Shown: positions 8,134 through 63,525, counted from the stretch's first letter. The stretch: 64,000 bases of DNA from Bugula neritina (GCA_964035545.1 OZ037767.1:21096628-21160627), one strand, 5' to 3'. Program-made: numbers and translations. The notes: generated from the sequence alone by a model not told the origin.

Positions 8134-8846
8134 CCCTCTTCCTCAAGCAGTACTACATTTTAATCAGGCTTTGACTGCATTATACCTGCACATTCTTTTC
8201 AGTCTAATAAATACCATTGTACTTGGAGGTTGTTTCATTTGGGCCACAGAAAGCAGCGCAGAAGAACGTGTTTGGTTTGGGCTATAACATTGTTAGTACA
8301 AGTTTTAGTGAGTTTTTTTATATTTTTAAAACTATTATTTCACTGCATTTTTTTTATTGTAATACACTGCATTCACTTATGCAATTTATTGCATTTATTT
8401 TTATTTTATTTTTATTGTATTTCCTATTTATTATACCACGTAATCATGTTGATGTAGGCACCATATGACCTGTTTCAAAATTTTGTCAGAAACTGCCGTG
8501 TCAATTGCTTATAAAATTTTCTGTCCTTTCTGAGTTGAACAACTGGCAATAGTTAAAACCTGCTTTTAACTTGCCTTTCCATATTCTATTTGAGTAACTT
8601 TGGCTTATCATTATGAATCATGAAAATAATTTTTAGAACTACTTTGGTTGTGATAATTAAGATGGAAATTTTTTAAGTTTCATATATTTTTTGTGTTTGC
8701 ATCAGTATGCTACATTAAAAATAAAACACTATGTGTACAAGTCTAATAGTTTATATATTATATGATATAACGCAGGATTATAGTTATGATAGTATGCTAT
8801 AACATACGATATATCATATCTTCAGCAGGGAATTGAACATTTGAAC

Positions 8847-11800
8847 ATGGCGGCTATAAAGACGGCAGCACAATGGAGTCATGTGACCAAAGCTGATGTC
8901 AGCAAAGCTGAACAAGAAGTCTATGCATCTCCTGAAAGGATCGAGTTTTACAGCAACAATGCAAACACCTATGAAGCGGACATGGGTTTGCACGGCTACA
9001 GGTACTGGTAGAGCTATATTTCCTTAGAAACTCAAATCCCCTGGTGAACTCACATATATTCCAACTATAAGTAATAAACTTTTTGATTGACTTCAACATT
9101 TGAAGATAATTTTTCATTTTAATCTGAACTTTTTCTAATCTGTTTTCTTGCATAAATTCACACCCTATTGGAACCTAGTAGATGCAACATAAATGAATAA
9201 TTACCTTTGGGTACTGTAACACTCGTAATATTATGTTTTTAACAAATTTTAGAACTTGAGAAAATTGCCTTCATTTTCAAATACTGGCCTTTTTCAAACT
9301 GTAACAAAACTCAAACATTTCAATATTAAAAGTAAAAATAAATATGTATTTTTGTGATATTCAATTGTAGTATGATGTAATTCATATATTTCATGTCTGT
9401 GTGTGTATATAATATAGTACATACGTATATTAGATCTATTTATGTTTATAAAGTGGACCAAAAGTTGCAGCTCAGGCTATGCACAGTTTATTTAAAGACA
9501 GGCCAAACTCCCACCTGTTAGATATCGGTTGTGGAACTGGACTCATTGCTGAGAAGGTAAAAAACTACTGCCTTCTCTTCAATCATTGGTTAACCTTAAC
9601 TGATGCCAGTATTACAGGGCAAGGAAATACACTGCAACACGCTTTGTTTTCTATATTTATTCTAAAATGTTCACTTCAATATAAAACTAGCCAATGAATA
9701 TATACATTTAACAGTAAATACAGTATTCGATAAAAACTAGGATTTGGTAAGCGGAATTAATTATTTTCTTCAATCTACCACAAACGCGCAATAGCATTAA
9801 AACATAACCTGCTGTGTAAAAACTGACAAATTGTGCTGTATGTATTTAAAATAACTTTTGAAATGCTGAAAAATTAGTGGTACAATTTAGAAAGCTGCCT
9901 CTATTTAGAACAGTCGCTTAAATTCAATATCTTTGATATTCCCATTGCTAGCTTAATACTCACAATACCTCTTTGCCCCCCTTCCTTTTCCACTCTTTGT
10001 TCCTTCCTTTTCCACCCCTTTGTTTCTTCTCAATCTACCCACTTGCCTCTTTCCCTTTCCATCCTTTAGTCTCCTTCTCTGTTTACTCTAAATTCTAAAA
10101 CCTGTCAGCAGCTAACCATAGGTTCGTTTATTTTGCATTGCAAAGTATGTGTAGCCTGTATTTCTACACTGTAGTTGCTGTCTCTTGGATCCTACCCTAA
10201 TCTGGAAGGTTTGGAGCCAGCAACAGGCATGAAGATGGTTGCTGAAGGAAAGAAGTTATATAAGAATATAATGCAGAGATTTTTGTATCTCAACTGTGGG
10301 CTGGAACACAGTAAGTTTTATATGCCCTGGTTTACATATTATATAGCTGCTTTCCATCCGTGAGGGAAGACTTAAACTTTCACTTACAGCATGTAGGAGA
10401 TGCATACGTATCATAGTAGCTATTTTTAACAATATAGGTAACTCTACTGAAACAAACATTTAAATATTTTGCATAAAATTAAATTCAAGTTCTACTCCAG
10501 TCCTACAGTTAGTACTTACGCTAGAATCGAGTCGGAAAGTACATGCAGTAGGTAAAAGCAAATGTCTGCTTGCTTGTTTGTCTATTTTCTTCTATCAAGA
10601 TATGCTATAAAGAGACCTGACTATCTAGCAGCTGACAGCTATAAAAGGAAGACTAGAGAATGCACCAAAATTGAGGTACTCATAGACAGAGGCAGCTGCA
10701 TGTGGTGACGTCACCACATGCAGTCACATGACCACAGAGTCACATGATCATAGGCTGTGATCCCAAAATATAGCTTCGGAATTTTATATAATTATGTTGG
10801 AAAACACAGCAAGTTGTTTTATCTGTGCTGTTTACTTTGGCATAAAAATGCAAAGGCTTTATACTTCAAAAACAGTTTTGACTTTATTAAATTAAAGCCA
10901 AAATTATCAAGTTTGTTCTTAACTAATATGCTTTCTCTCCAATAGCCTTCAATTTGTTTTCTTCAACTTGTTTTGGTCTTTCTTTTAGATACTTTTTTGC
11001 AAAAAACTTATTTTCGTCATGCTTGGGTTTTTAACTATAGGTTTAGAGGTTTTGTTGAGGGTGTTAGTGATGATTCCTTTGCTACAACTTACATGTAGAA
11101 TCACAGATGTTTTACTTGAGTTATTTCGCATAGAAATTATTGATGGATATATAATAAAGCTATATAATATATCAAGTAGATGACACCTTATAATAATATT
11201 ATAAGGTGTCATCTACTTGATATATATTATTATACTATATAATACATATTTTACTTATATTATGACTACATGTGTATATCATCTATAGCCTCTTCCTCTC
11301 CCTAGTTATAGTCCTAAGATAAGTCTTCGAAAGATTTTTGAACCAATGGTTATAGAAAGCTTGTATTTTCAGACACATATGATGGAATTGTTTCATCTGG
11401 AACTTTCATTGCTGGGCACATGAAATCTAACTGTTTGATTGAGCTCTGCAACATTCTTAAACCAGGTAAGAAAAACTGTTATGGCATAATTTCTACTTTT
11501 ATGTTATTTCATATGTTTACTAAAGGGAAACCTTTTATGTTTAGTAGAAATTGTCTTTTCTCTATAAACAAAGTGCATATCATATTTATAGAGCTGCAAA
11601 GCTTTAGTACTCCTAATAATAATGCAATTGATGTTTATAAAACATAGAATTTTGTATTTTTGCCTAAAACAAACATTTATTGTAGTTTAGATTTAGTTAA
11701 GTGAGAAAATATAACTTTTGCACTATTATGTCGCAGAAAACCCTGGCCATTAATTTTTTTTTAAACTGTAAGCACTTTAAAATCAATGGGCAAATTAAAT

Positions 11801-12115
11801 TAAAGTCAGAAAATTGCAAGGTTTCTATGTCATTAATATAATTTTGATGCGGCATCTACTGTTTTCAGCACTGTTCTTCACTCACTTGCAAACACCTCAT
11901 ATAAAACTTTACTTGCAGGTGGATATCTGGTGATTACGCTGCGAGATGAGTATTTGAAAGAAGTGGAAGAATACCGACTCAACTTTCAACCAACTATCGA
12001 CCAGCTGGTAAAGGAAGAGAAGTGGAAGGTTATTGTAGACAAGCTACTTCCTGACTGGATATTTGTTGGAAATAAAGGGTTGGCTGGGCGCCTTTTCATA
12101 TTTCAGAAATGTTAG
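8847..12115 (+). CDS. METTL27: METTL27/WBSCR27-like class I SAM methyltransferase, copy 1 (227 aa). Exons 8847-9001, 9454-9556, 10175-10310, 11373-11465, 11919-12115
   Basis: Exons join in frame via GT-AG: RIEFYSNNANTYEADMGLHGYSGP..LLDIGCGTGLIAEKL..LEGLEPATGM..LY..NTYDGIVSSGTF..GH..ELCNILKPGGYLVITLR..FQKC*. This matches the recalled METTL27 pattern (FY..A..Y..D...Y..P; LDVACGTG; G.D.S.GM; TFDAV...G; KPGG). Confidence 0.88.
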
Positions 12116-12732
12116 CCACACATGAATGGAATGTTGTGATTTATAGTTTAGGCAACTAATTCGTAAACACTGCTGATAGTTCTATTAGTTACAACTATGC
12201 ATTCACCATGCTTACAAGATTTCATTAGTATACAACATAATTCAACTAGTAATTATGGATAGGCTTTTATGTCTGCTATAAAAATATATTTCAACATTTT
12301 ATAAAATAACATATTTTTGAATTCATGGTTTTGACAGCCACTTTTTTACTATTTCTATTGTGTTTCATTATATTTTTATTGTTTTACAATAATAAAATGA
12401 TCTGTTAGATCCACAAGATCTGCTTTTACCTACAGGGAGAGCTATGCTGTGGCCAGCTTAGTTGATCTACATTCTACAGTATGTGCTAATGTGTTTGAAG
12501 AAAAATCATCCAATCGTAGTCATAGTCATTTCAAATATGCGTCAAGTCACCACTGCGTTGTAGGAGTCAAAACCCATTTACTTGACTGACTGATATAAAT
12601 CAGGATTAACTATTGATGCCAAGTTATTAGTTTTTTCACAAAAGAGCATAGAGGTAGAAAATACCATTATACAAAGTTTTGCATCTTAATTAGGAAACAA
12701 GTTCATGCGTACTTATTGTAACTATATAATCA

Positions 12733-13022
12733 AAGTATTATATATAACTGTAGAGTATTATATATAACTGTAGAGTATTATATATAACTGTAGTGTATTA
12801 TATATAACTGTAGAGTATTATATATAACTGTAGAGTATTATATATAACTGTAGAGTATTATTGATAACCGTAGAGTATTATATATAACTGTAGAGTATTA
12901 TATATAACTGTAGAGTATTATATATAACTGTAGAGTATTATTGATAACCGTAGAGTATTATATATAACTGTAGAGTATTATAGATGACTGTAGAATATTA
13001 TATATAGCTGTAGAGTACTGTA
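12733..13022. repeat. 20-bp minisatellite (TATATAACTGTAGAGTATTA)n, ~14 copies
   Basis: Directly visible. Confidence 0.96.
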
Positions 13023-13309
13023 AAGTATTGTTTCAACATTTTTTCGCATCAACAGTCTGCTGGAAAATACTACTAACCTTTAGTTTATAGTTACCGCAAG
13101 TTTTAGAATTATATCTGCTCAATTTATCAAAGGTTTTTCTCTTATTGATGACTTTTCGAGGTACGGTAATCATGAATTAAAAGCTAGCAATACTTTTCTT
13201 GTAACTTTTTTTATCTTTCATGAAGATTTTTTATGTTTTTATTGTATGTGATGTCAGTTCACGTTAATAATTCACCATATTTTACACAGGTGTGTTGCAG
13301 CAAGCCAAT

Positions 13310-14986
13310 ATGAAATCTGTGAACACCAAGACTGACTGGAAGCCTGTTCTGATTCCACAAGCAGAGCTTGGTGACAGCGAAAGAACAAAGTTTTATAATA
13401 ACCACGCAGTAGATTACGATGCTGACTATAAAGTATACTCTTACAGGTGTGGATATCATAAAGTATATAAATGGTGTCTGTAGGATGGTGGTTGGGGTTT
13501 GGGAAAATTTATCAACAGTGTGCAATTTTATCTACTTTTCCATTTGTGCCATTTTTACCTAAAATCAATATAAACATGATCGTGAGTCATTTTACTTAAT
13601 TTAGTACACACTGGAAATCTCCAGTGTTTAGCTGTTTTGTTCAATTTAGCTGGGCTTTGCCCAAAACTAGTAAAATATCAATAAATACACCTAAATAATC
13701 AAAGTTCTTCTTAATTTTGCTTGATTTCTCATGTTTTTTCCTATCTATTTAGCTAGTTTGGATTGTGGACCGTTACGAAACAACCATAACGGTCAGCAAT
13801 CGAAAGTAGCTGAATAATTAAGAAAAAACATGGGAAATCAAGCAAAATTAAAAAGAACCTTGATTATTTAGGTGTATTTATTGATATTTTAATAGTTTTG
13901 GGCAAAGCCCAGCTAAATTGAACAAAACAGCTAAACACTGGAGATTTCCAGTGTGTACTAAATTGAGTAGAATGACTGGTATGCTGTGGCACAGAATCAG
14001 ACGCAGTACCTGGTGTCAATAATGGCCCTGTCAAGGTTAGACAAATGACCTTTGGTTTATTAGGCCTGTGCTTTAGCCACTAGACCACAGCTATTATATT
14101 GTATATATAATATCTTAGGTGAGTATTCTTACAAGTGTATTTATAGGAACGTCTGTCTGGATAGAAGTTGACTTTTGACAATAACAAACCTCATTTAAAC
14201 AGCAAATGCTTAGCTCATTCTGAGAAAGTTAACCAAACTGAAACTTGCTGACTACCCAAGTTCCAAAATCAGACAATATTTCATTATTTGCAACACTTTT
14301 TGCAGCCTCCCACTATTTGTGCAGCCTTTACATACCCTGATAATGCAACAATACACTTCAACCTTTAGTAGATTGCATATAAGCAGATGTATGAGTATAA
14401 CAACACTGGCATGCTTCATCAACATGAAAGACAATGTATAGTGTCTGCAGCATGTCCCGGTCACATGTACATGGGGGTGAGAATGTAGAGCAGGGAGCTA
14501 AGAAATAGCTGTATCTCTACACAGACATTCTCTAGACAGCAATGGGCTTACTGCTTAGCTCCATAGCAAACATGTTTATCTTATATTTTGTGAGATCATG
14601 AGACAAAGTTGCATACACACAGTTCTTGTGCAATTAAAAGGTTCAACTATTAGGAATTCCCATGGGGACACAATCTTAAAACAAAATTAAGGTTCAAATC
14701 TGTGCAACTCCTGTGTGCAGAAGAGATAGTGTTTAGTAAGAAAACAACCTGTGAGTAGTTATTTAATGCAAACTGGCTGACTCAGGCTTATGCTGTCTTA
14801 AGCTCTGGCTTTCTCCAACTTAACCAGCACTTTTCTGAAGTTTACATGTAATAGTCAATAGAGGGTTAAAAACAGTTTTTATTAGAAGTAAAAGCTGCTT
14901 CTTCATGCAGACATTCAAGTCAGGTTTCTCAGTAGAACATGGATTTCATAAAAATTATATTTGGTACAATTGTATTTATATTATAT

Positions 14987-15080
<94 letters not shown>

Positions 15081-16601
15081 TACCATAATTATAATTATAT
15101 TTGGTTGGTTTAATTGGGAATAATATGACTCTATATCTCAACAGTGGACCTCGAGTCGTGGCTCAGACCACACACGATTTATTCAAAGAGAGGCTAGACT
15201 CCCGCATCCTAGATGTCGGTAGTGGAACTGGACTCATAGCAGAGAAGGTAAGGTTTCATACTAAGCCTCCATTTAGGTAGAAAAGTTGAGAAGTTCTAAT
15301 AGTCTAAGTTCGTTTCTGCACGGATTGAAATTTTTCAAGTCTTCAAGAAACAACTGCACTCAGATTAAACTTGCAGATTAATTTTAGTTGTTTTAAAAGA
15401 ACCTGGCAGGTTCCTTCTAGAAGTAAAGTCATAGCATAGCAGAGCAACTGCTTCGTTAATATTTGAAATTTCTGGTATAAGCATTTATTATCTCTCGTGT
15501 TTTTGTAATACAGTTGTTGGCTCTGGGACAGTACACTAACTTGGAGGGTTTGGAACCATCAGAGGGTATGAATAAGATTGCAAAGGAAAAGAAGTTGTAC
15601 ACAAATATAATGCAACAATTTCTGTACCTTGACTGTGGGCTGGAACATAGTACGTATAGTAATATTATATGCAATATGGTAATTGCTATGTATAATAGTA
15701 TAGTATATAATAGTGTGTGACGGGTTGTATAACATTGTAGATACATATGATGGAGTTGTGACTTGCGGAACGTTTGTAGCTGGACACATGAAATCTGAGG
15801 TGTTAGTTGAGATTTGTAACATACTTAAACCAGGTAAGATTATACAAGTTTACCTTCAGAACCTTCCAGTATTTTCCTGGTCGTTAAACTCTCATTGATG
15901 TGCAATTCTCACCAACACCCTCCGTCTCTAGGGTTTTTTCAACTCTTTTTGTACATAACCAGTATACAGCTTGATTCTGCATTAGTCATCAGAGTCAAGA
16001 AAAAATACCAGAAAAAAACTTTCTTAGTGTTTTTATGTTTATTTTTGTTTTAAAAGTTATAAAATAAAAAACTGATTCCCTTTAGTGTTGATTTGAGAGA
16101 CTTCAAGCATAGTAAAGTTAAAAGTTTTGCTTTTGTATGCAATTCCTGTGCTTGTATCACCATTTTGTTATATAAAGTATTTCCAATACTCTCCAAAGTC
16201 AGAAAACTGTCCAATCAAATATCTAGTGGAAGGGCAAAAGCAATTTTTGATAATAGAATTGAAGTATTGCAAACAACATTTCTAATAACAAATCGTGGAA
16301 TCTGAAATATAATTTTTTCTCCTAACACATGTCACAAAGATTCTGCTGATTATGTGATTATGCTCTGCTGCCTGTATAGCACTGTATCGTTCAACGTGCA
16401 GGTGGGTATTTCATAATGGCTATGAGAGACGAGTATTTGGAAACAGTGGAAGAGTATAAACTGCACCTGAGATCTACCATCAACAATCTGGTTAAAGAAG
16501 AAAAATGGAGGACAGTTAGAGACGAAGTTTTTTCAAACTGGTGGTTGCTTGAGAACAATCACGGATTAGATGGTCATTTGTTTGTTTTCCAGAAATGTTA
16601 G
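13310..16601 (+). CDS. METTL27: METTL27-like methyltransferase, copy 2 (222 aa). Exons 13310-13446, 15145-15247, 15514-15649, 15741-15833, 16402-16601
   Basis: Same intron positions and phases and same internal exon sizes (103/136/93 nt) as copy 1. Motif ILDVGSGTG; ends FQKC*. No stops or frameshifts seen. Confidence 0.87.
13585..13977. mobile_element. 393-bp foldback/MITE (two ~190-bp inverted arms) in intron 1 of copy 2
   Basis: AGTCATTTTACTTAATTTAGTACACACTGGAAATCTCCAGTG... is mirrored by ...CACTGGAGATTTCCAGTGTGTACTAAATTGAGTAGAATGACT. A diverged single arm of the same family lies at ~7390-7535. Confidence 0.85.
14025..14093 (-). mobile_element. Degenerate tRNA-derived SINE head
   Basis: Minus strand reads AGCTGTGGTCTAGTGGCTAAAGCACAGGCC (A-box-like). 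The B-box is degenerate. Confidence 0.35.
14993..15073. repeat. (AT)n microsatellite
   Basis: Directly visible. Confidence 0.98.
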
Positions 16602-18199
16602 CTTTTAAAATAAAATTTCAAGATCATATTATGAACTAGTAGAACTCATAACACCAGGAATGATTCTGTGTGAAGTAAATTCACAATAAAACAAACATTC
16701 TACACCTTAAACATCGACAGCGTTTCAAATCATGCTAGATATTGGTTTTGCTGTTGAAAGTCACAAACTGAAAGCTTGCTTTGCTTAGGTTTCATTATGC
16801 ATATTCTTTCTATTGAGTAGAAGTAGACTACTCTAAAGATTATAGGCTTGCAACTATATAGGCATTTTAATAACCTCTTAGTATTAATTACTTGACATAT
16901 ACAGAGATGACATTCCTTGTTATAGTATTGTCATGCTCTATATTATATAATATTATATAACATAATAAAACTCTGCTTTCTAGAAAACATGGCTTATATT
17001 TTCAAACCTTCAACTAAGCCTTATATGTGTTTTAAAACACAACTCAATGACTTGTAGCAGCAGTAATGCCACCTGCAAAAAACCTGCCATATTTACCAGT
17101 GGCAGTTGCAAATTGTTATCGTACCCTAGAAAGCAATGTAACTGCAAAATTCAGAGTTGTCTTTTCATATAAAAGTAGAACTGATTACATATACATGGGG
17201 TATTTCCTGTTGGTGAGTGAACATTTGAGAGCCGGATATGCGAGGCTAGCTTAGAACCACATGGAGTTATATAACCTAAGTTTCTATCACGAATCTGACT
17301 CACATAATGATGGCTTGCTGTTGAATGTTCTTCAAAATGAATTTTCTGTTGTACTGGCTAGAACTCCATTTTAATATGCTTGAAGTTAAACAACAATCTT
17401 TGAATTTCTGCTATCAATGACGCAGTCATCTTATTTATAGTAATGTTTATATAACTTTTACTTGACTTAATTTACTGTCTACAAATATGAGATAATTTAT
17501 GCGTGCAAACAGATGGTACTTACTGGTTTTAAAGCAGTTAGAACCTGTTTGTTAACCCTGTAACATATTGTGCAACATTGAGAAAGTAAATCCAACCGGT
17601 ATATAACTAGCTGAAAGCAACTTAGTTAGAATAGAAAATAAGTGAATGGAAATGCATGGAAATAATATATTATTATATATAGGTGTTTTCTGTGTATAAT
17701 ATGGTGGGCTTGTTTGCCTTTGGTGGTTACAGGATCAGTTAAATGATGACACCCAATGGCAGCTAACTTTCAGCTTATGTGTTACTGTTTGCTTATAGAT
17801 TGTCATTTTACATGGCTCTAAGCTAAATATAACATTATATTCCTGTGGTCCATAGTGTCATATCATATAGCTCCACAAAGAGATGACAGGACAGAAATGG
17901 CTTTATACTTAGCAATAAGTACACAGTTAGATTAGAATAAATAAATGTATTTATTTATCAAATGCATAGCAATGTTGATATGACTGAAAAAAAATGCTCT
18001 ATTACAAAATATGAGCAAAAATTAATATTTGTTAGCTTACATAAAAATTTCATTTTTTAATCTATTTCAAGCTATAAATAAATAAAAAATATTCCTGTGC
18101 GTACCATACCCTAAAATCCTCAATCGAGAATGTTTTATCATATAGCAGGAAGAAGCAGTTTTCAAAAAATACTTCTAAACTAAAATTGACAGCACCAGA

Positions 18200-21100
18200 T
18201 CAACATTTCTGGAATACAAACAGATGCCCATCTACTCCTTCATTATTCTCAAACACCCAATGATTTGGATAGAACTCGTCTTTAACTATTTTCCATTTCC
18301 CTTCTGTGACTAGCTTATCAATAGTGGGTCTGAAATTTAGCTTATACTCTTCAACCGTCTCCAAGAATACGTCTCGCATGACCATCACAAAATATCCACC
18401 TGCAGGTAAATATTATGAGCACTAAACTTAGCCTATAAAACGTCTAGGAGAATTGTGAGAGCTAAACAAATGGTCAAAGAAACTTTTGTTTTGAGTAGCT
18501 ACAGTTATGCGCGTCTGTCTTTCATGATGAGTCACTACTGTACCAGAAAAGAATGTTGCCATTCACTGATCAATGAGTATGCATCGATAGCATCAATACC
18601 AATATTAAAAAACTAAAGTACACTAAAAACTAAATTTTGATATGTCAGTGTAAGCATAAAGCATCTTTACTAAAGGTTTCAATTTGATAAATGTTTCATT
18701 GCATGTAGGCACAGTCTTGCTGTGACAGCTAGTTATTGCTTGTCACAATAAGATCGTGACAAGTAATAGCAATCCGTAATAAAGTTTAGCAGAACCCAAC
18801 TATAATAGTTTGAGCTAATAAGGGAGCGGGTAACATAGCAATTGATAAACACCAGAAGCATCATGTGAAGTACACATTGTCAAGAGAAGCATACAGTGGG
18901 CTAGGTTTTATAGCTTGCCACTGGCAAAACGAGTAAAAACATGGGGAAACAATGGAACTATTTTGCGAGTTTTATTTTTAAAAAAATTCAGGTCAGAATA
19001 GTATTCTAATATATCGAGAATTGCTTATCATTAAAAGTGAAAAGATACTGAATAAACAGGTTGGTCTTTGGGAAAAACCCGTATAATCTTACCTGGTTTA
19101 AGTATGTTACAAATCTCAACTAACACCTCAGATTTCATGTGTCCAGCTACAAACGTTCCACAAGTCACAACTCCATCATATGTATCTACAATGTTATACA
19201 ACCCATCACACACTATTATATACTATACTATTATACATAGCAATTACTATATACACAACCATATGCCATATAAGATTATTATACCATATAATACTATTAT
19301 ACGTACTATGTTCCAGCCCACAGTCAAGGTACAGAAACTTCTGCATTATATTCGTGTACAACTTCTTTTCCTCTGCAATCTTATTCATACCTTCTGATGG
19401 TTCCAAACCCTCCAAGTTAGTGTACTGTCCCAGAGCCAACAACTGTATTACAAAACCCCAGGCTACTTTGGCAAGAGTATAAATATAAATATCTACAAGG
19501 TCATATCAGTTACACCATAGCTGTGTTTCTAAAAAGAATTTAACTTAACACAGCAGTTGAGTACAAAGTGACTTTCCAGAAACTACCTGGTTTCCAAAAT
19601 AAACTACTATCAATTATCTAATTAATTTGAATGAAATAAAAAGTGACATATTTACTGTATTATTAACAGTCAAAAGAACAGTAAGTTCACAAAAGCATTA
19701 ACTACATTAAATGGATAATATTGCAAAGGAGGGACTTTTTTACCTAAATGGAGGCTTAGTATGAAAGCCTTACCTTCTCTGCTATGAGTCCAGTTCCACT
19801 GCCGACATCTAGGATACGGGAGTCTAGCCTCTCTTTGAATAGATCGTGTGTGGTCTCAGCTACTACGCCTGGGCCACTGTTAACATAAATAGTTATTAGA
19901 ATCCTTTGAAAGCTGGTTGTGTGACACTAGACTTGTGTATCACATAGTGAAGCTTGTTGACTGGCATTGTACCAAGGCTAACTTCAGCACAGCAGATTTG
20001 GGTAGGCCTACTGGAAAAATGGCTTTTGTGTTACAATCACATGAGTTAGGCTGCTAGAAGGTTGAGGTGTGTGTGTGCGTGCTAATGAAGTGGGCAGATG
20101 AATGCAAATAATAACAAATAGGCTATTGAAGAAAAATGTTGGACATTTTTGTTAAGACATTGATTAAGTGAATATCTGTTTGACTGAGTGAAAGACTGTT
20201 TGAATTTTGACTGGGAAAATTGATGTATAAATTGTGGAGGAATCACTGTTAGAGTGAGTGAATATTTTGTATTAGCAATAAAGTGAATTATTGTTTTCTA
20301 GCTAATTATTTTTTATTCAAAACTAAAACTTGAAACTAAACCAAAATCAGTAAAAATTAGTCTTCTAGCTTGTTATGAGGCATATGTTTTAGTTTTATAG
20401 TTACTTGATAGGTTAAAAGAGGAGTTGTGTTACTTATGATTATTAGTTTGATCCACCATTCCAGGCAATATTTTGAGTTCAAAGAAGCACTGTGAGCCAC
20501 GACAGTGGTCAAAGAAATATTCTGTTGTTATTGCAAAACATGTCACCTGATTTTCTCACAGTAAGCTATGTTATGTTACCTGAACCTAACTGGATATTGT
20601 CTGGTTACTCCAGTACGTTCTTTGTTGTCTGAATCATTTCAGGTTTAGCATTGTGCGTCAGCTATCTGAGCTTTTTCTCAGACTATGAGCTTTCCCCTCT
20701 CCAGACAACAGTATGTGATGGAAAGTAGATTTAAAGGTAATTACTGCAGCTGACTGATATCACTTTTGAAGGAATATTTATTTTAAACAGTGTTATATAA
20801 ACATAACCGAGTTTGTATGTGTCAAAACATGGGTTTGTGTACGTAAGAGCTTTAAAGAATTTGTACAAGACAGAAGGTTTGCAATTGCAGACAGAATGGA
20901 ACCAATCAGAATGACTTTTATATACAGACACACTTGACTGCCCCTGGATGGTCATCCTAGGCATGCAATGAGCTAAATGGTTTTGAGATGGAAAATAAAT
21001 ACAGAATTGCTGCTTTTTTAAAAATCCCATATGATTTGGATGATAGCATAGACAGTAAAATAAGAATGCAGATTTTTCTCAATCAAATTTGTTCCAGTTT

Positions 21101-21374
21101 TTATAAGTATTTGTAAGGAAATGCATTGCGCTCTCTGCTTTGAAATTGACTTTTTTAGCTATAGAGATAGACTTTGTGTGTTTAAAATAAAATAAAAAAA
21201 GAAAATAGTCAAGTGATAGACTACCTACCCATAGCCATAAACTTTCATGTCTGAATCATAAACGGCAGCATTGCTGTTATAGAAATCAAGTCGTTCAACT
21301 GAATCCTGCTTCTCATCAATCACAGTAGGTTTGGCTACTTCATTCCATGGTGCTGCTGTCTTGGTGGCGGCCAT
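18200..21374 (-). CDS. METTL27: METTL27-like methyltransferase, copy 3 (225 aa). Exons 21374-21229, 19876-19774, 19442-19307, 19185-19093, 18399-18200
   Basis: MAATKTAAPWNEVAKPT..RLDFYNSNAAVYDSDMKVYGYGGP..ILDVGSGTG..KPGGYFVMVMR..FQKC*. All junctions are GT-AG and in frame. Convergent with copy 2. Confidence 0.87.
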
Positions 21375-22117
21375 GTTGGATTCCTTACTCTAAGTAAGTG
21401 AAGGTTAACTAGGTTAGTTCTTGTTTAGTAAAACAAAAGTAAAACAGGTAAAGTTTTTTGAAGCAACTATGAAAAATAAGCAACCATGTAGATTATTACG
21501 ATTAGCAGTGCACATTACAGATTTCGATTCCTAAAATTGTCAGTTAAAATAGTAAAACCTAAAACATGATACCTAAGCAAAGAGAAATTGCAAAAATCAA
21601 TAAAATTTTGATCATTAAATTATGTTTACAGTCTTCAGTCTGCCTTTAATTTTCTGAATAGTCTGAAAATCCTTCTTTATTAAAAATATATTATACTATT
21701 ATTAATATTGAACAATGTAATTCTATTTCAGCAAAGTTTTAATCACATAATGATTAACTTAATCATAATGTGAATGTCATTCAATTTCAAAGGAGGAAAA
21801 ATACTATAGAATATTACAAGTGACTTACTTTCCTAATCAAAGAATGAGAATGTATAACTAATAAACTAACCAGTCAAGTACAACTGTGCAAGGAGAAGTC
21901 AAAGGACCACGTTACTGTTTACTATCTTTAGTAGTTGAAACAAAAGCAGCCGAAAGCCTTCAATAGCTGATGCAGAATGTCATTCGACTTGTCACTGCAT
22001 ATGATAAATTAGTCTCGTAGGGACCTTTGAACTTATGGGGTTTGGCTCATTCAGTCAGTGCCCAAGTAATGATGAGCAGTGTGCAGCATAATTTTAAAGT
22101 ACTATTTATTGTTGTGC

Positions 22118-22362
22118 CTACTACTGCTGCTGCTACTGCTACTACTGCTGCTACGACCACTGCTGCTACTACTGCTGCTACTACTGCTGCTACTACTGCT
22201 GCTACGACTACTGCTACTACTGTTACTACTGCTACTACTGCTACTACTGCTACTACTGCTACTACTGCTACTACTGCTACTACTGCTACTACTGCTACTA
22301 CTGCTACTACTGCTACTACTGCTACTACTGCTACTATTGCTACTATTGCTACTATTGCTACT
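22118..22362. repeat. (GCTACTACT)n / CTA-CTG trinucleotide-type microsatellite
   Basis: Directly visible. It explains the poly-T/A, poly-L and poly-S ORFs. Confidence 0.97.
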
Positions 22363-23303
22363 TATACATTGACAGTAACACACTGGCCAACTGATTCACC
22401 ATGTTTCCAAGCTTCGCAGGATAGATTTTTTGAAGTTTGGAAACAAGAAACTACCATAAGTTTTGGGACATTTCAAGAGCATTGAAAGTTTTTGTTATAT
22501 TATGTTAATATGTAAACAACAAACCACATCATTACAGCTTTAATGGGAGTTTCATACCTATGTTAGCTATCCTATGCTTTTTCTGTAATTTGTTTGCTTA
22601 TGTACAGCTATTTTGGCTACCTACCACAAAAAAGCTAATTTTGGACTACTATATAAACAAGGCACTTATGTCTTTCCTCTCTTTACATTCAATCTTGGTG
22701 CTCAATATACATATTAAAGCACAACAATAACTTCATGAAAACTGCAACTACAAATTGGTATTTTACAAATGTCAACCAACACCTTATATTCATGTTTCCA
22801 TCATGATTTTAGGTAAAAATGGCACAGGTAATAATGGCACAAGGGAGACCGAAACATTAAATGTTATAACTGTCAAAGATGAAAGCATACCAGTAGAAAT
22901 TTTCCACTAGCCAATATTCTACTGAAATCAGTGTTACCAGTGCCTTCTGTGTGAATGATTAAATCAGAAAGAGCTATATTGTAAAAGTTGGTGCCGGGTA
23001 AATGTTTTACCAGACACCCACTTTTACTGCATGCACCTAACTGCATCATTGACAGCTACAACATTTAATATTTCCTCTCCCATACTAGAGTGATCAGCCA
23101 AATAAATTAGTGAACTGCTAGTACATTCAAAACTCTGGCAAAGCCAGCTATTGCCAACATCATTCTTGTTCTGCCAATCAACTCACATAATCTTAGAATT
23201 TCAACAGTAGCAAACACTTTATAAGCTGTATGGCATACCTGTAGGTGAGCCAGCAATATATCGGAAGTTGCCTACTTCATGTAGATGAAGTTACATTTAG
23301 GAG

Positions 23304-23504
23304 GAATGGTTCTATAAGCAGCGCCGAGTTGCTGGTGAATGAGTGCGGTAGTTTGGGAGGGGGGCCCCAACGTTGCAAGCAATGAACTTAATAATAGTCT
23401 ATTCCAGCTCAGTGGTTCCAAGTCATGTTCCCAACTCCAAACTTGAGACTCCCAAACTACTGCACTTGTTAACCACCAACTCAGAGCTGCTTATAGAACT
23501 ATTC
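23304..23504. mobile_element. Palindromic MITE, family A
   Basis: GAATGGTTCTATAAGCAGCGCCGAGTTG...CAACTCAGAGCTGCTTATAGAACTATTC; homologous to 4970-5143. Confidence 0.75.
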
Positions 23505-23513
23505 ATTCAGAAG

Positions 23514-23678
23514 CAGTAGTGGAGAACTTGAGAAAGCCTAAGCTCTTCAGTTTTTTATTGAATTTTTGTTTGGGGCGCAGGGTTGAAATTCTTCCATTAA
23601 CATAACTTCAGTGAACATAACTTCTTCTGCTAAATTTCTAATCCAGAACGCAGGCTTTTCTCAATTTCTCCATTACTG
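23514..23678. mobile_element. Small TIR element (MITE)
   Basis: CAGTAGTGGAGAACTTGAGAAAGCCT...AGGCTTTTCTCAATTTCTCCATTACTG inverted termini. No clear TSD. Confidence 0.5.
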
Positions 23679-24004
23679 ACCAATGAAGACATAATTTTGA
23701 GAAAAGGCATTGGTTATTTGCATTGTGCTTTAGCTGTACTGAACTGATAACGGATACGCCTTTACAATTGATTATTGTTGAAACTGAAAGCTTTAAATTA
23801 TGTCCAGTTCAACTTATTTGACTAAGACCAAGTGATTACATCTACATTTTCACTTTTAAGTTTTACTTACTTTTTTAGTACTAATACTAGTAATTGTTGC
23901 ATGATTATGATACCGATTAAGCTTAACTTATACTAATACAGTTAGTTATACAGTTAGTTTGACTTAGACTTATACTTATAATTATACTTAAACAGTTAAG
24001 TATT

Positions 24005-24320
24005 GCTATAATTATTAGTATTACTATTACTATTAGTATTACTATTACTATTACTATTACTATTACTATTACTATTACTATTACTATTAGTAATAGTAAT
24101 TACTATTAGTATTACTATTAGAGTATTACTATTAGTATTACTATTAGTATTAGTATTAGTATTATTATTATTATTAAATTTAATATTACTGTTACAGTAT
24201 TAGTATTACTATTACAGTATTAGTATTACTAATACACTACTAGTAATAGTTACTTATACTAATAGTAATACTACAACTATTAGTTTACTATTAGTATTAC
24301 TATAATTATAATTATAATCA
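24005..24320. repeat. (TATTAC/TATTAG)n low-complexity tract
   Basis: Directly visible. Confidence 0.9.
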
Positions 24321-24639
24321 TAATACTGATAGTCACCACTAGACACTATGACTATTGTTATGATTATCACTATCAGTATCACTATAGTCTATGTCCTTAG
24401 GCTTAAGAGTATGACTATTATAAATTATAATTATTAAAATATTATTAACAATAACCCACCTTGTAAAAATTAGAACACTCTGCTGACACCCACAAGCGAA
24501 AAATTATGAGTGCCTCTTATGTTGTTTTTGTTTGAGTTTATCATATGTTGAAATGCATCTATTTTAGCATGTTGCTAAGTTTGGATATTGTAATGTAAAG
24601 GGTTTTAGCACATAGCTAAGCTGAGTTTGTGTTATGAGG

Positions 24640-25056
24640 TGGTATCCTCAAATCTCTAATGCTTCGATAGAGAAAACTGTTGTGAAAGGTCTGTGAGGAT
24701 GCAAAAATAGATGTTGGTTCTCCTCTCTTAGCGCATCAAGTGTTTATTGACCAATTTGAATTTAATAGTTCATCATAAGCAGATGAAAGCGTTTCATGGC
24801 GCTCTTCATCCGAGAGTATTCTCATCAACAAAGTTAATCTGTGGTCTTTTAGTTGGCTAGCAAGAGTTTTAAGCTGTAAATCAGTGCGAGCATCACTGAT
24901 GCCACATCTTCCTTTAAGGTTAGCAATAAACCTGATGGCTTGATTTTGTACATGTTGAATTTCCTCACAGGCACTTTTGTTAGTTGGATCCCACAACGTG
25001 TCTGCATACTCAAGGATAGGTCTACATAGACTGAGATATGCAATTAATTTTGCCTT
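24640..25056 (-). mobile_element. 5'-truncated, decayed non-LTR retrotransposon (LINE, CR1/L2/jockey-group) ORF2 C-terminal fragment
   Basis: KLIAYLSLCRPILEYADTLWDP...IQHVQNQAIRFI...L.L.TL...RL, plus FHNSFLYRSIRDL downstream. These are the typical post-RT motifs (RP.LEY...WDP, VQ..A.RF, SF.PR.IRD) of these LINEs. Confidence 0.85.
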
Positions 25057-25182
25057 CATGGGTGTTTTATTAATTATGACTTACAGTAAATAATACTAAT
25101 AGTGATACAACTATAAAAAATTACAAAAGAGAACGAATATAATCCATAAAAAATGTTACATATAGTTAACCTGTTTGTCTAT

Positions 25183-25487
25183 TGTGGTGGTTCGTGGAAC
25201 TACCAGCAGCACAACATGTAGGGTCGCGTAATTGACCCGGAACAATGGATAGCCAATTAGCGTAGTTGATAGTTAGCAGCAATTGTAGTTTCCCGCTGCT
25301 AACTCAGTCGAAGCTAGAGTGTGAAATAGATTAGATGTGTAACTTGTTTGGAAATAATGTATCGTTTTTATAATGTATAATTGTGTGTAAAATATACTCG
25401 TTCACTCGACTTATCCTGGTGCAGTTCTATAGTAAATAAATAGACTCTCTGGATAGCACATCAACCCTAAATCTGAAAAATATAACA
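25183..25487 (+). repeat. 5' LTR (305 bp)
   Basis: TGTGGTGGTTCG...AATATAACA; identical to 32385-32689 except T25233 vs C32435. Contains AATAAA. Confidence 0.97.
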
Positions 25488-25488
25488 G

Positions 25489-25506
25489 TGGTGGCAGCGG
25501 TGGGAT
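25489..25506 (+). promoter_or_regulatory. Primer-binding site, tRNA-Leu
   Basis: TGGTGGCAGCGGTGGGAT is the reverse complement of the 3' 18 nt (ATCCCACCGCTGCCA-CCA) of animal tRNA-Leu(AAG) as I recall it. It starts 1 nt after the LTR. Confidence 0.88.
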
Positions 25507-25518
25507 AGTGCATCCAAG

Positions 25519-26472
25519 ATGGAGACTGAAAATGCTGGAACTCAACCACCGGCAATCGAAGGTGAGCGTAGAGTCAATGCTGTAGAGACAATGCCTGTTA
25601 ACCATGTAGTAGAAGAGCGAAGGGTTCTGCGAGAACTAGCTGAGGACCGCTACAGGTTAAAGGCGCCCACCTTCACGGGTGAAGAGGAGGTGGAACAATT
25701 TATCCAAGAGTTTAGCGACGTAATGGACGTCGCTCAGTGGCCCCCTGGGGTGGCCTTGCTGAAGCTTAGAATGGCATTGATGGACAAAGCCAAGCCCTAT
25801 GGGCTGGGCGTAGACATTGATAATATCTTTGCTTCTCTGCGGGCCCGCTTTGGCCTCTCTGCTACAGATGCCAGGGCCCGATTGCAAAGGTTGCGGCGTG
25901 ATCCCCGCACCCCGCTGCGGGAGCATGCCGCCGCGGTCATGAAGCTGGCACAGATCGCGTACGGCGACTTGCCCCCAGTCAACCGCGAGAGGTACACCCT
26001 CGACGCTTTCATAGCATCTGTCGACGATCTGGGTCTCCACCACCAGTTTCTAGCTAGGGGAGTCACCACCGTTGAAGATGCTCTGACTGAGGGGGAAGCT
26101 TACCTCCTAGCTAATCAAATGCATAAAAGCCGCGGAAGCTCCCGCCAAGTGGAGATAGACCGCGCAGACGCGGCCGCGGGACAAGGGGAGGAAACCCCCG
26201 CCGCGGCTGCCGTGTCCCAGTTGGCGACGGCATCAAAAGTCACTCAACTGACGGACATGCTAGCCAAGCTGATAGCAACACTGACACCACAAAACCCAGT
26301 GAGTACCGCCCCTGAGCCCATGCGGCCATCGGCGCCGCCACAGGGAGAAACAGTCAGTTTTTGCTGGGAGTGCGGAAATCAAGGACATTTCCGCCGATAT
26401 TGTCCCTTCCTAAATCAGGGGTTAAACTACCGCGGCCCGCAGATGTTCCCACCTTCCGCGGGCCGACGATGA
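25519..26472 (+). CDS. gag: Gag (317 aa) with a CCHC zinc knuckle
   Basis: Capsid-like APTFTGEEEVEQFIQEF...W...L.ARF, and knuckle CWECGNQGHFRRYC. The ATG follows the PBS by 12 nt. Confidence 0.93.
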   Translation: METENAGTQPPAIEGERRVNAVETMPVNHVVEERRVLRELAEDRYRLKAPTFTGEEEVEQFIQEFSDVMDVAQWPPGVALLKLRMALMDKAKPYGLGVDIDNIFASLRARFGLSATDARARLQRLRRDPRTPLREHAAAVMKLAQIAYGDLPPVNRERYTLDAFIASVDDLGLHHQFLARGVTTVEDALTEGEAYLLANQMHKSRGSSRQVEIDRADAAAGQGEETPAAAAVSQLATASKVTQLTDMLAKLIATLTPQNPVSTAPEPMRPSAPPQGETVSFCWECGNQGHFRRYCPFLNQGLNYRGPQMFPPSAGRR

Positions 26473-29400
26473 AACCTCCAGGGAAGAAGAAACGCAGGTC
26501 ACCCAGACGGGTACCGCGTACTGGCAACCAACAGTGGCAACAGCCACGACGGACCAGCAAAGGGCTTTGCCCCGCAGCTGCCTTTTCTATGCCCCTTCAC
26601 AACAGATTCACAGGGCTACAAGTCCAAGAATCTGGATGGGAGCCCACAAAGGTAGCTGAGAACCTAGCCTCGGCACCCCCGAGGCCTACCTACCACCGCC
26701 CTAAGAGACCTCCTTCGCGACCCAAAGCGAGGGAGGTACTCCCTGCGAGAGTAAGGCCTGAAGGGAGAGTTCAGGTGCAGCCCCATGGGAACAGCTATTT
26801 CTTGCCCGGTAAACTGGAAGGCAAAGCTGTTACTTTCCTCATTGATTCGGGCTGTACCACAAACCTCTTAAGCCGCCAACTCTTCGACACCCTCAGTACT
26901 AGGGTCAGGGGCGAGATGGAAACATACGAAGGGGAATACGGCACCCTCGCTGACGGGTCGTGCCTTCCCTTCTATGGTATAATTGAGCTGACGGGACGAG
27001 TCCGTGATCAAACGATCCAAGAGACGTTCATCGTCAGTCAGCTCAAGGAGGATGCTATCCTCGGGATGCCGTTCCTTAAACGGCACGGATGTCACATAGA
27101 TTTTAGCAGATCTGCAATGATGATGTCCGGGCGGGAACTCGCCTGCGTCGACAAGTTCGGCCGCCCTTTAGTGGGAGGTGTGCAAGTGGTACGCAACCGT
27201 ATCATACCAGGCCGCTCCCGGGCTACCATTCACTGCAGGGTGAATAGTAGCCGGATCTCTGGACTCGGGGTGGTTGAAGGCGCGCACGAAAAGATCCAAC
27301 TTGCCAGCAGTCTGAATCAGCTGACTGAGCAAGGGGAGATCTTAGTGCAGTGTGTCAACCCCTTTACCGAGCCTATCAAGCTCCCGGCTGGGTCGATGCT
27401 GGGCCGTTTTCACTCTGTTCAGGAGGGAGACGTAGGCCCGTCGCTAGGTGATGCGACGGAGGCACCCCCTCAGTGCCCTATTCAGGGACGGGGGGCAGTC
27501 CCAACACATCTCCGGGAGTTATACGAAACAGCCAGTGGCGGCTGCGCGAGTAACAGAGAACGCCAAGCTATGGCTAAGTTACTACGCGACTACGGTGATG
27601 TGTTCAGCAGCGGAGAGCATGACGTGGGACTGACTGGAATTGTCAGACACGAAATACCGCTGACTGCAGGGACAGTCCCTGTCCGGCAGCCCACACGCAG
27701 ACTGGGGCCGGAGAAAGAGAAGGAGGTTAGCCGACAAGTACGGGATCTTCTGGACCGGGGACTGATAGAGCCCGCCCATAGTGCGTGGAGCTCGCCAGTC
27801 GTACTGGTCCGGAAGAAAGACGGCAGTTGGCGGTTCTGTGTGGACTACCGCAAGCTCAATAGCGTAACCATACAGGACGCCTACCCTCTACCTCGTATTG
27901 ACGAGTCATTGGACGCCCTAGCCGGCAGCAAGTACTTCAGTACGTTAGACTTGCTAAGCGGCTATTGGCAGGTTCCTCTGAGTCCCGACGCCCAAGAGAA
28001 AGCGGCGTTTATCACACGGGACGGTTTGTGGAAGTGGAAGGTGCTGCCCTTCGGGTTAACCTCCGCCCCAGCCACCTTCCAGAGGCTGATGGAACAAGTC
28101 CTTAGCGGACTCCATTGGAAGACACTGCTGGTCTACCTCGATGATGTCATCGTAATCTCTCCAGACTTCGAGACACATGTCAGTCGTCTGCAGGAGGTTT
28201 TCGAGAGACTCCGAGGTGCCGGTCTTAAGCTCAAACCTTCCAAGTGCGCTCTATTGCAGCCGGAGGTCAAGTATCTGGGGCACGTTGTCGGTCGAAACGG
28301 CGTGGCAACGGATCCCGAAAAGGTACGGGCAGTAGAAGACTGGGTCACCCCCCAAGACTTGACCGGACTCCGGGCTTTCTTGGGGCTGGTAGGGTATTAC
28401 AGGCAATACATACCAGACTTTGCGGGCATAGCCCAGCCGTTAAACCGGCTCACCGCAAAGGGAGTGACGTGGCAGTGGACTCCAGTCGAGCAAGAAGCGT
28501 TCGACCGCCTCAAGGGCTGCCTACTAACGGCGCCCATCTTGGCCTACCCAGACCCCACTCTGGAGTACATCCTCGACACAGACGCCAGTGACCAAAATGT
28601 TGGCGCTGTGCTGTCACAAGTGCAGGAAGGCCGAGAGGTAGTAGTAGCCTACTACAGCAAGTCTCTCTCACCCGCTGAACGAAATTACTGCACTACCCGC
28701 AAGGAGCTGCTGGCAGTAATCAAGTCGGTGAAGCACTTCAGACCATACCTATACGGCAGGAAGTTCCGGCTGCGTACGGATCATGCCTCGCTGATCTGGT
28801 TGTGGAAGAGAGCAGAGCCCTCCAGTCAGGTCGCCCGGTGGCTCGAAATCCTAGCTGAATTCTCATACCGGATCGAACATCGACCGGGCAAGAGACACAG
28901 CAATGCGGATGGGTTGAGTCGCCGACCTGACGGAGGTTGCAAACAGTGTCTCAACATCGAGAGGAGGGATGGAGGTCCCCCGCGATGCGAGTTGGAGACG
29001 CTGGCTCATCACAGAGCACCGTTTGACTGGGACCAAGGTCAACTCAGACAAAGAGTTGATGAGTCCCCGGAGGATGTACAAAACCTCCGCGCCAACCCTG
29101 TATTGGCCGGTAATGTTCGAGAGCTGAAGAAGCTCCAAGAAGAGCTGCCTGGAGTCGTGGCAGACATATACCGGGCCAAAAGGGAAGGGCGACGACCCAG
29201 CGAGGAACGCATACGACAGGGATGCGCCGAGTTCCGGCTATACTGTCAGCGTTGGGACTCGCTGCGGATCGGGCAGGATGGGTTGCTAACCATCTCTCTA
29301 GCTGCCAGCGGCAGACACCCGGAAAGGAAGAGGGTAGTCTGCCCCACGGCCATCCGCCGTGAGTTGATTTGGGATACTCACAAACAGATCCACGCAGGGA

Positions 29401-30992: not shown

Positions 30993-31306
30993 TTCAAACC
31001 ATTTCACACATTCAGTATGTCTTACGACAACAGATCGTGGGGTGAGTTAACTATATCTTAATACGAAACTAGATTGCATCGCTCAGCTCTGACTCACTGA
31101 GTCAATCGAGCTGGAGATAGGTTAGTGAAATACCGTAGTAAGAACTCAGTTTGACCTAGAGATTTTTATAATCTCATTGCAATACGTGTTCTATCTGACT
31201 ATTCACTACCATTAATCTCTACGAGGTAACTGAATTAGGAGTTGCCAAGCTGTTCAAGCTGACAACACAGCAGTGTACTGTATTAACACTGTTGAAACTT
31301 TTTCAG

Positions 31307-32094
31307 ATTACACTCGACCCGCTACAACCAGGGTACGGGATAGAACACTTCCCGCTCCGTATCCGGAGGAGTATGCTAGTGGTGACCGGCCTGAGCCACT
31401 ACGCCGCCGTTGGCGGTGGGTGTCTCCACAAACAGAGGAAGAAATAGAAACGGCCTGGGGGTCCAGAGGACGGACGAGATGCCAGATCTGTGGTGAAGAT
31501 TGCGCCTCTCACCGCTCCCTTAAACTACACGCCAATGCTCATCTCCTACTAACATTCTGCTCCTGCGGGTACAATGATGTGTATCCCTACCCCGTCACCA
31601 GACACCGAGCGACGGGCTGTTTCCCTGGAGAAAACTACGTGGTCGACGCTAAGCTATACCCGGAGTTCCTCACACTTATACGACCTCTGGTGAAGAAGGC
31701 CATGTTGTTAGCCGTTCTGTCCTCGGGGTTCCAACGTGTGTTAGACAACGCCCGCCAACAATCCCCGTTGGTGTCTGACCGCCCTCAAATTACATACACC
31801 CCCGAGGAAACTGCATGTCCAGAAGAAGGAGAGATCTCCCCTACCCCGACGAAGAGACGAACCAGGTCCCCCAGTCCACCCTTGCGCCGCAGACGGACGC
31901 CGTCCCCAGACCCAGTACGCCTAGCCACAGTAGAAGAACGCCTCCTGCGATTACAAGAAGAATTCACCCAGCTGGCACCAGATCTACTTAACACTACAAC
32001 AGGACTCTTCCAGCTAAAGGGATCCGTATGCCGTATAAAACGGAAACTGCGTACATGCCAAGCCAAACACCGGCGTGCCCAACAAGGACTCTAG
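31307..32094 (+). CDS. Retrotransposon ORF3 main exon: C2H2 + C2HC zinc fingers, Arg/Ser-Pro basic tract, C-terminal coiled coil; probably expressed by splicing
   Basis: Open for 262 codons inside the LTRs. CQIC-x12-H-x3-H followed by CSC-x12-H-x4-C. Acceptor TATTAAC...ACTTTTTCAG at 31306. No N-terminal ATG, no signal peptide, no TM segment. Confidence 0.78.

Positions 32095-41865: not shown

Positions 41866-63525
<21,660 letters not shown>

Follow-up and report, generated by a model that had tools for sequence, protein, structure and literature searches.

A mosaic methyltransferase gene and a 19.8-kb inversion between two lineages of Bugula neritina

Introduction

Inversions by nonallelic homologous recombination (NAHR) between inverted gene-derived repeats are known from F8 intron 22 and from IDS/IDS2. 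The arms of primate Y-chromosome palindromes undergo concerted evolution by gene conversion. Repeat-mediated template switching is also established as a source of inverted duplications in which one junction falls within inverted repeats (PMC4352052, PMC11293582). Here, we describe a locus in a 64,000-nucleotide stretch of the Bugula neritina genome (GCA_964035545.1, OZ037767.1:21096628-21160627; referred to in full length as “the window”) that carries five paralogues (copies c1 to c5), each with five exons, of one methyltransferase family. The original prediction for this locus held that the convergent genes c2 and c3 flank an invertible last-exon cassette and that c5 would be a snapshot of its opposite orientation. 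We find that c5 joins the 5′ part of a c3-like gene to the 3′ part of a c2-like gene, that the same combination occurs in a sibling lineage, and that the lineages differ by a larger inversion of about 19.8 kb. On balance, we favor an old repeat-mediated rearrangement, combined with this inversion and with gene conversion, over a working 3-kb cassette. The comparison comprises one assembly per lineage, namely, the genome containing the window and a draft from Virginia.

The locus resembles rearrangements of the DUP-TRP/INV-DUP class, as described for MECP2 and PLP1 (PMC4352052, PMC11293582), in that one junction lies inside inverted paralogous repeats and the others are blunt or show microhomology. 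As in that class, the product holds an inverted duplicated segment and can yield a fusion gene. However, the Bugula repeats are 351-nucleotide (nt) exon blocks of convergent genes rather than multikilobase low-copy repeats; the event is evolutionary, fixed, and reconstructed from two diverged assemblies rather than seen de novo; and its junction product is an intact and apparently functional third paralogue. The second rearrangement is like the NAHR inversions at F8, IDS/IDS2, and FLNA/EMD in that a block of about 19.8 kb between 1.7-kb inverted repeats is inverted in the sibling lineage. In contrast to those inversions, both Bugula partner genes carry the same 3′ type, so the genes stay intact and their exon combinations are unchanged, and the exchange point is masked by homogenization of the repeats within each lineage.

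Concerted evolution of palindrome arms offers a third parallel: Bugula copies group by lineage despite an older duplication, the exon 3-4 arms of the Virginia lineage are nearly identical, and small patches keep paralogue markers across lineages. Here, however, homogenization spans the exons of the cofactor-binding core and some flanks and stops sharply at exons 1 and 5 (42% and 66% amino acid [aa] identity between types). Finally, alternative C-terminal segments face each other between inverted repeats, as in shufflons and other invertible switches (R64 Rci, Hin/Gin) and in plastid inverted-repeat flip-flop. Unlike those systems, the Bugula locus has neither a recombinase nor short recombination sites, its arms have diverged, one orientation is seen, and it consists of two separate genes rather than one gene with alternative tails.

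Results

Copy 5 combines the 5′ part of copy 3 with the 3′ part of copy 2

We named the first exon A in c2 and B in c3 and c5, and the last exon Y in c2 and c5 and X in c3. The genes, the short inverted repeat within c2 and c3, and the c5 segment are as follows.

8841-12115, plus strand: copy 1 (c1), an older paralogue
13310-16601, plus strand: copy 2 (c2), type A-Y, METTL27/WBSCR27-like methyltransferase, 222 codons
13310-13446, 15145-15247, 15514-15649, 15741-15833, 16402-16601, plus strand: exons of c2
21374-18200, minus strand: copy 3 (c3), type B-X, 225 codons
21374-21229, 19876-19774, 19442-19307, 19185-19093, 18399-18200, minus strand: exons of c3
32931-34892, plus strand: copy 4 (c4), an older paralogue, tail-to-tail with copy 5
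40142-36543, minus strand: copy 5 (c5), type B-Y, 225 codons
40142-39997, 38212-38110, 37681-37546, 37413-37321, 36742-36543, minus strand: exons of c5
15501-15851, plus strand: left arm of the short inverted repeat (exon 3, intron 3, and exon 4 of c2 with splice flanks)
15852-19074: spacer S (intron 4Y, exon 5Y, tail-to-tail intergenic DNA, exon 5X on the minus strand, intron 4X)
19075-19455, minus strand: right arm of the short inverted repeat (exon 4, intron 3, and exon 3 of c3)
35957-40750, minus strand: c5 segment, c3-like from 40750 to 37303 and c2-like from 37300 to 35957

The reading frames of c2, c3, and c5 are open, all of their introns are GT-AG, and exon 2 of each encodes the S-adenosylmethionine (SAM)-binding motif I, LDVGSGTG. 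Homology searches were run exon by exon, and the frames of the joined exons were checked locally. As had been predicted, the last exons are clearly different (X at 18399-18200 and Y at 16402-16601 share 73 to 74% nt and 66% aa identity) and intron 4 is in the same phase, phase 1, in all three genes. The first exons A and B are 42% identical in aa sequence.

The predicted inverted block shared by the convergent genes c2 and c3 is also present. Self-BLAST and a repeat search aligned c2 15501-15851 with c3 19455-19075; the alignment spans 381 columns at 88.7% identity and contains one 30-nt indel and, among its 351 aligned nt, 15 mismatches. In c2, this repeat contains exon 3 (15514-15649), the 91-nt intron 3, and exon 4 (15741-15833), and it extends into the 3′ splice region by about 12 nt and into the 5′ splice region by 18 nt. 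The spacer between the arms is single in the genome, the paralogy of its two exons 5 aside. Much longer matches lead to c5: c2 15501-17181 aligns with c5 37694-35957 at 90.7% over 1,746 columns, and c3 19075-22127 aligns with c5 37303-40750 at 85 to 94% identity. Overall, c5 is about 91% identical to each of its c3-like and c2-like matches. The matches among the three copies have E values of 0, far outside chance.

A three-way alignment bore out the predicted mosaic of c5, which tracks c3 through GTAAGATTATACGGGTTT and tracks c2 from ACTTTCAGAACC on, as far as c2 position 17181. The switch maps between c2 positions 15847 and 15852, about 18 nt into intron 4, within GGGTTT at the inner edge of the short repeat. 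A switch at this edge is expected from either recombination or template switching if the lesion lay in the spacer, and it does not discriminate between them. A search across the assembly for further copies or haplotigs of the locus found none; the locus is single-copy and in one orientation.

The sibling lineage carries the same three exon combinations

A search with exon 5X reached proteins of the draft B. neritina assembly GCA_010799875.2, a Canu assembly of PacBio reads from two colonies at Oyster, Virginia, with high heterozygosity (PMC7576161). Because its DNA is 83 to 90% identical to the window, we take the Virginia lineage to be a diverged member of the B. neritina species complex. We compared 25.3 of the 33.9 kb of contig VXIV02002291 (contig 2291; retrieved as L010 and L016) and all 17.9 kb of contig VXIV02001306 (contig 1306; L015).

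All three combinations, A-Y, B-X, and B-Y, are present in the Virginia assembly. The orthologue of c2 (P0002) is of type A-Y, with exon 1 A 87% and exon 5 Y 86% identical to the window. A B-Y gene (P0018, the counterpart of c5) and a B-X gene converge around a spacer that is collinear with window positions 15852-19052; the counterparts of c3 are P0001 (X exon, 95% aa identity) and the mis-annotated P0020. In both lineages, A-type and B-type intron 2 turn alike at one point, the 3′ splice site of exon 3. We saw no A-X gene in the window genome or in the Virginia assembly sequence that was compared.

These proteins also bear on the identity of the family. P0002 and P0018 carry the NCBI name WBSCR27 and Methyltransf_23/11/25 domains, and P0018 aligns with the solved structure of METTL27, 7QCB (E = 2.3e-12), whereas the Pfam matches of individual window exons, searched singly and not as a spliced protein, are weak. 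Judged by sequence, c1 to c5 form a cluster of METTL27/WBSCR27-like class I SAM-dependent methyltransferase genes.

Two observations concern the Virginia contigs themselves. An independent contig from a Joint Genome Institute (JGI) metagenome (L011) is 99.96% identical to contig 2291 over the spacer; a search of sequence records and two metagenome scans found no independent contig that crosses the repeat in either lineage. In addition, contig 1306, taken as its reverse complement, shares an overlap of 7.1 kb with contig 2291 at 96.2% identity and beyond it carries a second upstream flank of B and the start of a second c4. We considered whether the two contigs represent opposite spacer orientations, which would be direct evidence of a flip, but did not prefer this explanation, as the would-be allelic flanks are only 78 to 84% identical. 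An extended palindrome appears to fit the overlap better, judging from the 25.3 kb of contig 2291.

The original prediction anticipated that reversing the spacer would turn c5 into a contiguous copy of a single template. A contiguous gene running from B through exons 3 and 4 to Y and into the spacer does exist in Virginia, but its partner across the spacer is B-X and not A-X. A reading of c5 as a recent snapshot of a flip between c2 and c3 did not hold, given that the B-X/B-Y duplication is older than the lineage split (see below).

Two further observations were made in the Virginia spacer region. Intron 4 of the Virginia B-X gene is composite: behind exon 4 come 170 nt of Y-type intron with AACCAG at their end, to which a complete X-type intron is attached at a duplicated AACCAG/GTAAGA (L015 about 14370-14545; contig 2291 21658-21830). 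This leaves two candidate 5′ splice sites 170 nt apart, and the NCBI model P0020 is mis-framed there. The Virginia spacer also has an insertion of about 400 bp (L015 12315-12749; contig 2291 23451-23849) at the equivalent of window position 17231/17236. Neither the window nor the flank of c2 in Virginia has this insertion, which had no match in the other sequences compared.

The lineages differ by an inversion between the long repeats of copies 2 and 5

Alignment of the two lineages placed the following features in the window.

15499-35325: block that is collinear with, but inverted relative to, Virginia contig VXIV02002291 25244-13703, where the long terminal repeat (LTR) element of the window is absent
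15501-17181, plus strand: long repeat i+y of c2 (exon 3 to 3′ flank), inverted relative to c5 37694-35957, 90.7% identity

The order in the window is c1, c2 (A-Y), spacer, c3 (B-X), c4, repeat X (described below), and c5 (B-Y), whereas the Virginia order is c1, c2 (A-Y), fragments of repeat X, c4 (minus strand), B-X, spacer, and B-Y. The flanks are swapped as an exchange within the i+y repeats predicts. Thus, the lineages differ by one inversion of about 19.8 kb, at whose ends lie the inverted i+y repeats (1.7 kb) of c2 and c5. It alters no protein type or exon combination; what it changes is which Y-type gene adjoins the spacer. The idea that homologous recombination inverts this locus was right insofar as recombination between inverted segments of these genes has demonstrably turned DNA around here between the lineages. 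The inverted block, however, is bounded by the c2/c5 repeats rather than by the c2/c3 arms, and no A-X gene results.

The copies of y are uniform within each lineage, with 45 sites grouping by lineage against 3 others, which masks the exchange point within the repeats. Derived changes common to c2 and c5 at 15615-15618 form a single patch and are a hint only. We infer that the spacer moved from a position between B-X and B-Y, as in Virginia, to one between A-Y and B-X, as in the window. This direction follows from parsimony: the Virginia-like order was chosen as ancestral because losing the s1 flank and the second copy of the flank plus c4 is easier than gaining them.

Cross-lineage markers and shared junctions point to an old B-X/B-Y duplication

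Trees of the B 5′ region (b), the exon 3-4 block (i), and the Y region (y) group the copies by lineage at 100/100. A different signal is found at 19870-20240, where intron 1 passes into exon 2. There, the Y-linked B copies of both lineages have a 6-bp deletion, several substitutions, and a Pro-to-Leu change in exon 2, and the X-linked B copies of both lineages carry the alternative states. Over a 500-bp stretch, 5 sites and the indel back orthology, whereas 0 back the other cross-pairing. Because these markers cross lineages, the B-X/B-Y duplication should be older than the lineage split.

The surroundings of c5 provide a second line of evidence and include the following features.

35158-35957, plus strand: repeat X, abutting the 3′ end of the c5 segment; fragments lie beside c4 in the Virginia contig
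40750-41621, plus strand: repeat X′, a direct copy of X (Kimura two-parameter [K2P] distance, 0.09), abutting the 5′ end of the c5 segment
22127-22400: trinucleotide repeat tract, upstream of c3, where the upstream homology of c3 and c5 stops

Repeats X and X′, an 800-bp sequence, are not present elsewhere in the genome, and the X/c5 and c5/X′ junctions are blunt or have 1 nt in common. In both lineages, the 3′ flank of a Y-type gene is joined tail-to-tail to repeat X beside c4. The breakpoints between flank and X lie only 0.7 and 0.27 kb apart (17181/35957 in the window, 17869/35687 in Virginia), and this near-coincidence suggests one ancestral junction; in Virginia, the junction of the c2 flank with X is occupied by simple repeats. 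Our conclusion is that the three combinations, B-X, B-Y, and A-Y, were in place before the lineages split and that most of their common DNA has been homogenized within each lineage by gene conversion. Such conversion has visibly been active in Virginia, where B-X and B-Y hardly differ in their exon 3-4 blocks and 170 nt of Y-type intron lie in B-X.

A model for the origin of B-Y

The reading that we favor, with modest confidence, is that a duplicative rearrangement of the inverted-duplication or template-switch kind gave rise to B-Y as its junction gene. Copying or recombination would have crossed between the exon 3-4 repeat arms, so that B-X contributed the 5′ part of the new gene and A-Y the 3′ part. 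The Virginia order could be read as the trace of such an event, in which the path ran forward as far as the 3′ flank of c2, turned back in inverted orientation through c4, B, X, and Y, switched at the repeat, and resumed its forward course. Gene conversion later kept exons 2 to 4, the Y region, and a large part of the B 5′ region alike in each lineage, while the first exons A and B and the last exons X and Y remained distinct. The subsequent inversion of about 19.8 kb through the i+y repeats would have relocated the spacer. The mechanism by which B-Y arose and the ancestral arrangement are the parts of this model that we infer, whereas the sequences themselves show the mosaic, its occurrence in both lineages, the 19.8-kb inversion, the clustering of copies by lineage, and the diverged arms.

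Alternative origins

Among the alternatives, we first considered an in-place flip before the split. In this scenario, the convergent pair was once A-X/B-Y, B-Y was duplicated to give c5, and a single or rare exchange between the 351-nt arms then flipped the 3.2-kb spacer to give A-Y/B-X. The exchange is exactly reciprocal, the parts missing from c3 relative to c5 being found on c2; the switch lies at the inner repeat edge, where a break in the spacer would put it; the intron 4 phases are identical; and a contiguous B-Y gene beside the spacer exists in Virginia. However, this scenario needs two events where a single chimeric duplication would do, and it needs an A-X gene, which is seen in neither lineage. 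It also fails to predict, without further steps, that the Virginia spacer lies between B-X and B-Y. Between lineages, A and Y have evolved faster (87% and 89 to 94% aa identity) and B and X more slowly (96 to 98% and 95%), and these paired rates weakly fit a long-standing linkage of A with Y and of B with X. We therefore regard such a flip as possible but unlikely.

A second alternative holds that c5 is young. A single replicative event in the window lineage after the split would have copied the 3′ part of c2, switched arms at the inverted repeat, continued into the 5′ part of c3, and inserted the copy 3′ of c4, where 800 bp of target sequence were duplicated (X/X′); the Virginia B-Y gene would have arisen independently at the same repeat. 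Several findings speak for this view or weigh against the older origin that we prefer. The duplicates in the window have diverged to a similar degree (noncoding divergence of 0.08 to 0.10 for c3/c5, 0.07 to 0.09 for c2/c5, and 0.09 for X/X′; K2P of 0.07 to 0.10 overall), at 0.6 to 0.75 of the between-lineage distance. Taken at face value, such uniformity across b, y, and X/X′ fits a single younger duplication better than patchy conversion does, and it accords with the grouping of copies by lineage. X and X′ flank the c5 segment exactly, with blunt or 1-nt junctions, which looks like a target duplication at the insertion of c5. The signal that crosses lineages is confined to one patch of about 400 bp. 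The same inverted repeats are reused in independent human rearrangements (PMC4352052, PMC11293582). The Virginia evidence comes from 25.3 of 33.9 kb of contig 2291 of a heterozygous Canu draft (PMC7576161), the choice of an overlap of contigs 1306 and 2291 over a conflict of orientation is drawn from 96.2% identity over 7.1 kb, and the ancestral arrangement rests on parsimony between the two lineages.

Uniform divergence and lineage grouping first led us to favor a c5 younger than the split. We downgraded this view on two counts: the 6-bp deletion, its flanking substitutions, and the Pro-to-Leu change mark the Y-linked B copies of both lineages, and independent origins are improbable for two c2 flank-X joins that lie only 0.7 and 0.27 kb apart. 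We now consider a young c5 rather improbable.

The repeat arms do not behave as an active switch

We next weighed the proposal of a spacer that flips recurrently, in the germ line or soma, and so yields A-Y, B-X, A-X, and B-Y genes in populations. Two open reading frames (ORFs) would be kept in either orientation, the locus is indeed inverted between lineages, and the variable exons 1 and 5 would encode the N terminus and β6-β7 region that form the substrate site in mouse WBSCR27 (PMC9240639). The arms argue otherwise. They are short (351/381 nt) and diverged, and compared with seven other copies (c3, c5, and five from Virginia), the c2 arm has nine private substitutions and a 30-nt deletion, none of which has been copied into c3 or c5. 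The longest exact run common to both arms is 79 nt. Given these private changes, the deletion, and the brevity of exact identity, repeated flipping is unlikely. Moreover, one orientation was found in the assembly with no second copy of the locus in the genome, and A-X was seen in neither lineage. As had been noted from the sequence, there is also no sign of a dedicated recombinase: none appears in the ORF lists of 9-22.5 kb and 41.5-64 kb, and the sole mobile element seen is the LTR retrotransposon at 25183-32689. Overall, recurrent flipping is highly improbable, an active-switch role for the 3.2-kb spacer is not supported, and the notion of four enzyme variants from two genes in a shufflon-like arrangement is speculation.

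A related possibility is that the orientation of the spacer or of the 19.8-kb block is still polymorphic in living B. neritina, with some haplotypes carrying A-X/B-Y at c2/c3. We consider this very unlikely. If true, ordinary homologous recombination between exon blocks would shuffle the substrate-site elements of a METTL27-type enzyme, namely, the N terminus from exon 1 and the β6-β7 region from exon 5.

The origin of the short repeat was considered separately. If inversion through a staggered break had created the repeat, the c2 and c3 arms should resemble each other more than any other pair does; we rejected this origin because the c2 arm is the most divergent.

Finally, local mis-assembly of the window or of the Virginia contigs as the source of the mosaic or the inversion is scarcely credible: although the Virginia sequence is a Canu draft from two heterozygous colonies (PMC7576161) with repeats of 2 to 3.5 kb, the window comes from a chromosome-level long-read assembly (PMC11480708) in which the repeats are only 0.35 to 1.7 kb long and about 91% identical, two assemblies show the mosaic independently of each other, and the JGI metagenome contig agrees with contig 2291 over the spacer.

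Homogenization spares the exons that may shape the substrate site

In mouse WBSCR27, the N terminus and the β6-β7 loop fold over the cofactor and form the substrate site, and the substrate is unknown even for the mouse protein (PMC9240639). In Bugula, the parts that have escaped homogenization, exons 1 and 5, would by position encode the corresponding N terminus and β6-β7 region. The three natural combinations of exon 1 and exon 5 offer ready-made chimeras for the study of specificity. More broadly, the locus is a small, clean case in which short inverted exon blocks between convergent paralogues seeded rearrangements. These made a new chimeric gene and later reordered the cluster, while conversion kept the catalytic core uniform and left exons 1 and 5 free to diverge. 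This is not a new kind of system, and reading it as a switch calls for read-level evidence.

Other features of the window

The trees of exons 1 and 5 were expected to disagree, and they do so across c1 to c5, more deeply than among c2, c3, and c5. Exon 1 B is nearest to c1 (50% aa identity), exon 1 A is nearest to c4 and to Watersipora METTL27 (40 to 43%), and the last exons X and Y are each other's nearest relatives (66%). This conflict implies that mosaic evolution in the family is older than the events that shaped c2, c3, and c5.

Upstream of c3, positions 22070-22400 consist of an impure trinucleotide repeat (GCT/ACT type, with periods of 9 to 12 nt) that is conserved upstream of the Virginia B genes and is likely a fragile site. 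Within intron 1 of c2, 635 bp (13980-14614) are inverted relative to Virginia (L010 10008-9359), with both flanks collinear. A 393-bp fold-back at the left breakpoint of this inversion (arms 13585-13775 and 13787-13977, 91 to 93% identical) is missing in Virginia.

The LTR retrotransposon between c3 and c4 (25183-32689) has 305-bp LTRs that are 99.7% identical and an interior of 52 to 57% GC against a background of 32 to 39%. It is missing from the orthologous intergenic site in both Virginia contigs, which marks the insertion as recent. A 20-bp tandem array of about 20 units lies between c1 and c2 (12674-13093) and also occupies the orthologous Virginia site (L010 8460-8750). Two long tandem arrays, at 45817-46682 (about 0.9 kb) and 52020-53080 (about 1.1 kb), have copies that are 89 to 98% alike, and both lie between c5 and a minus-strand kinesin gene.

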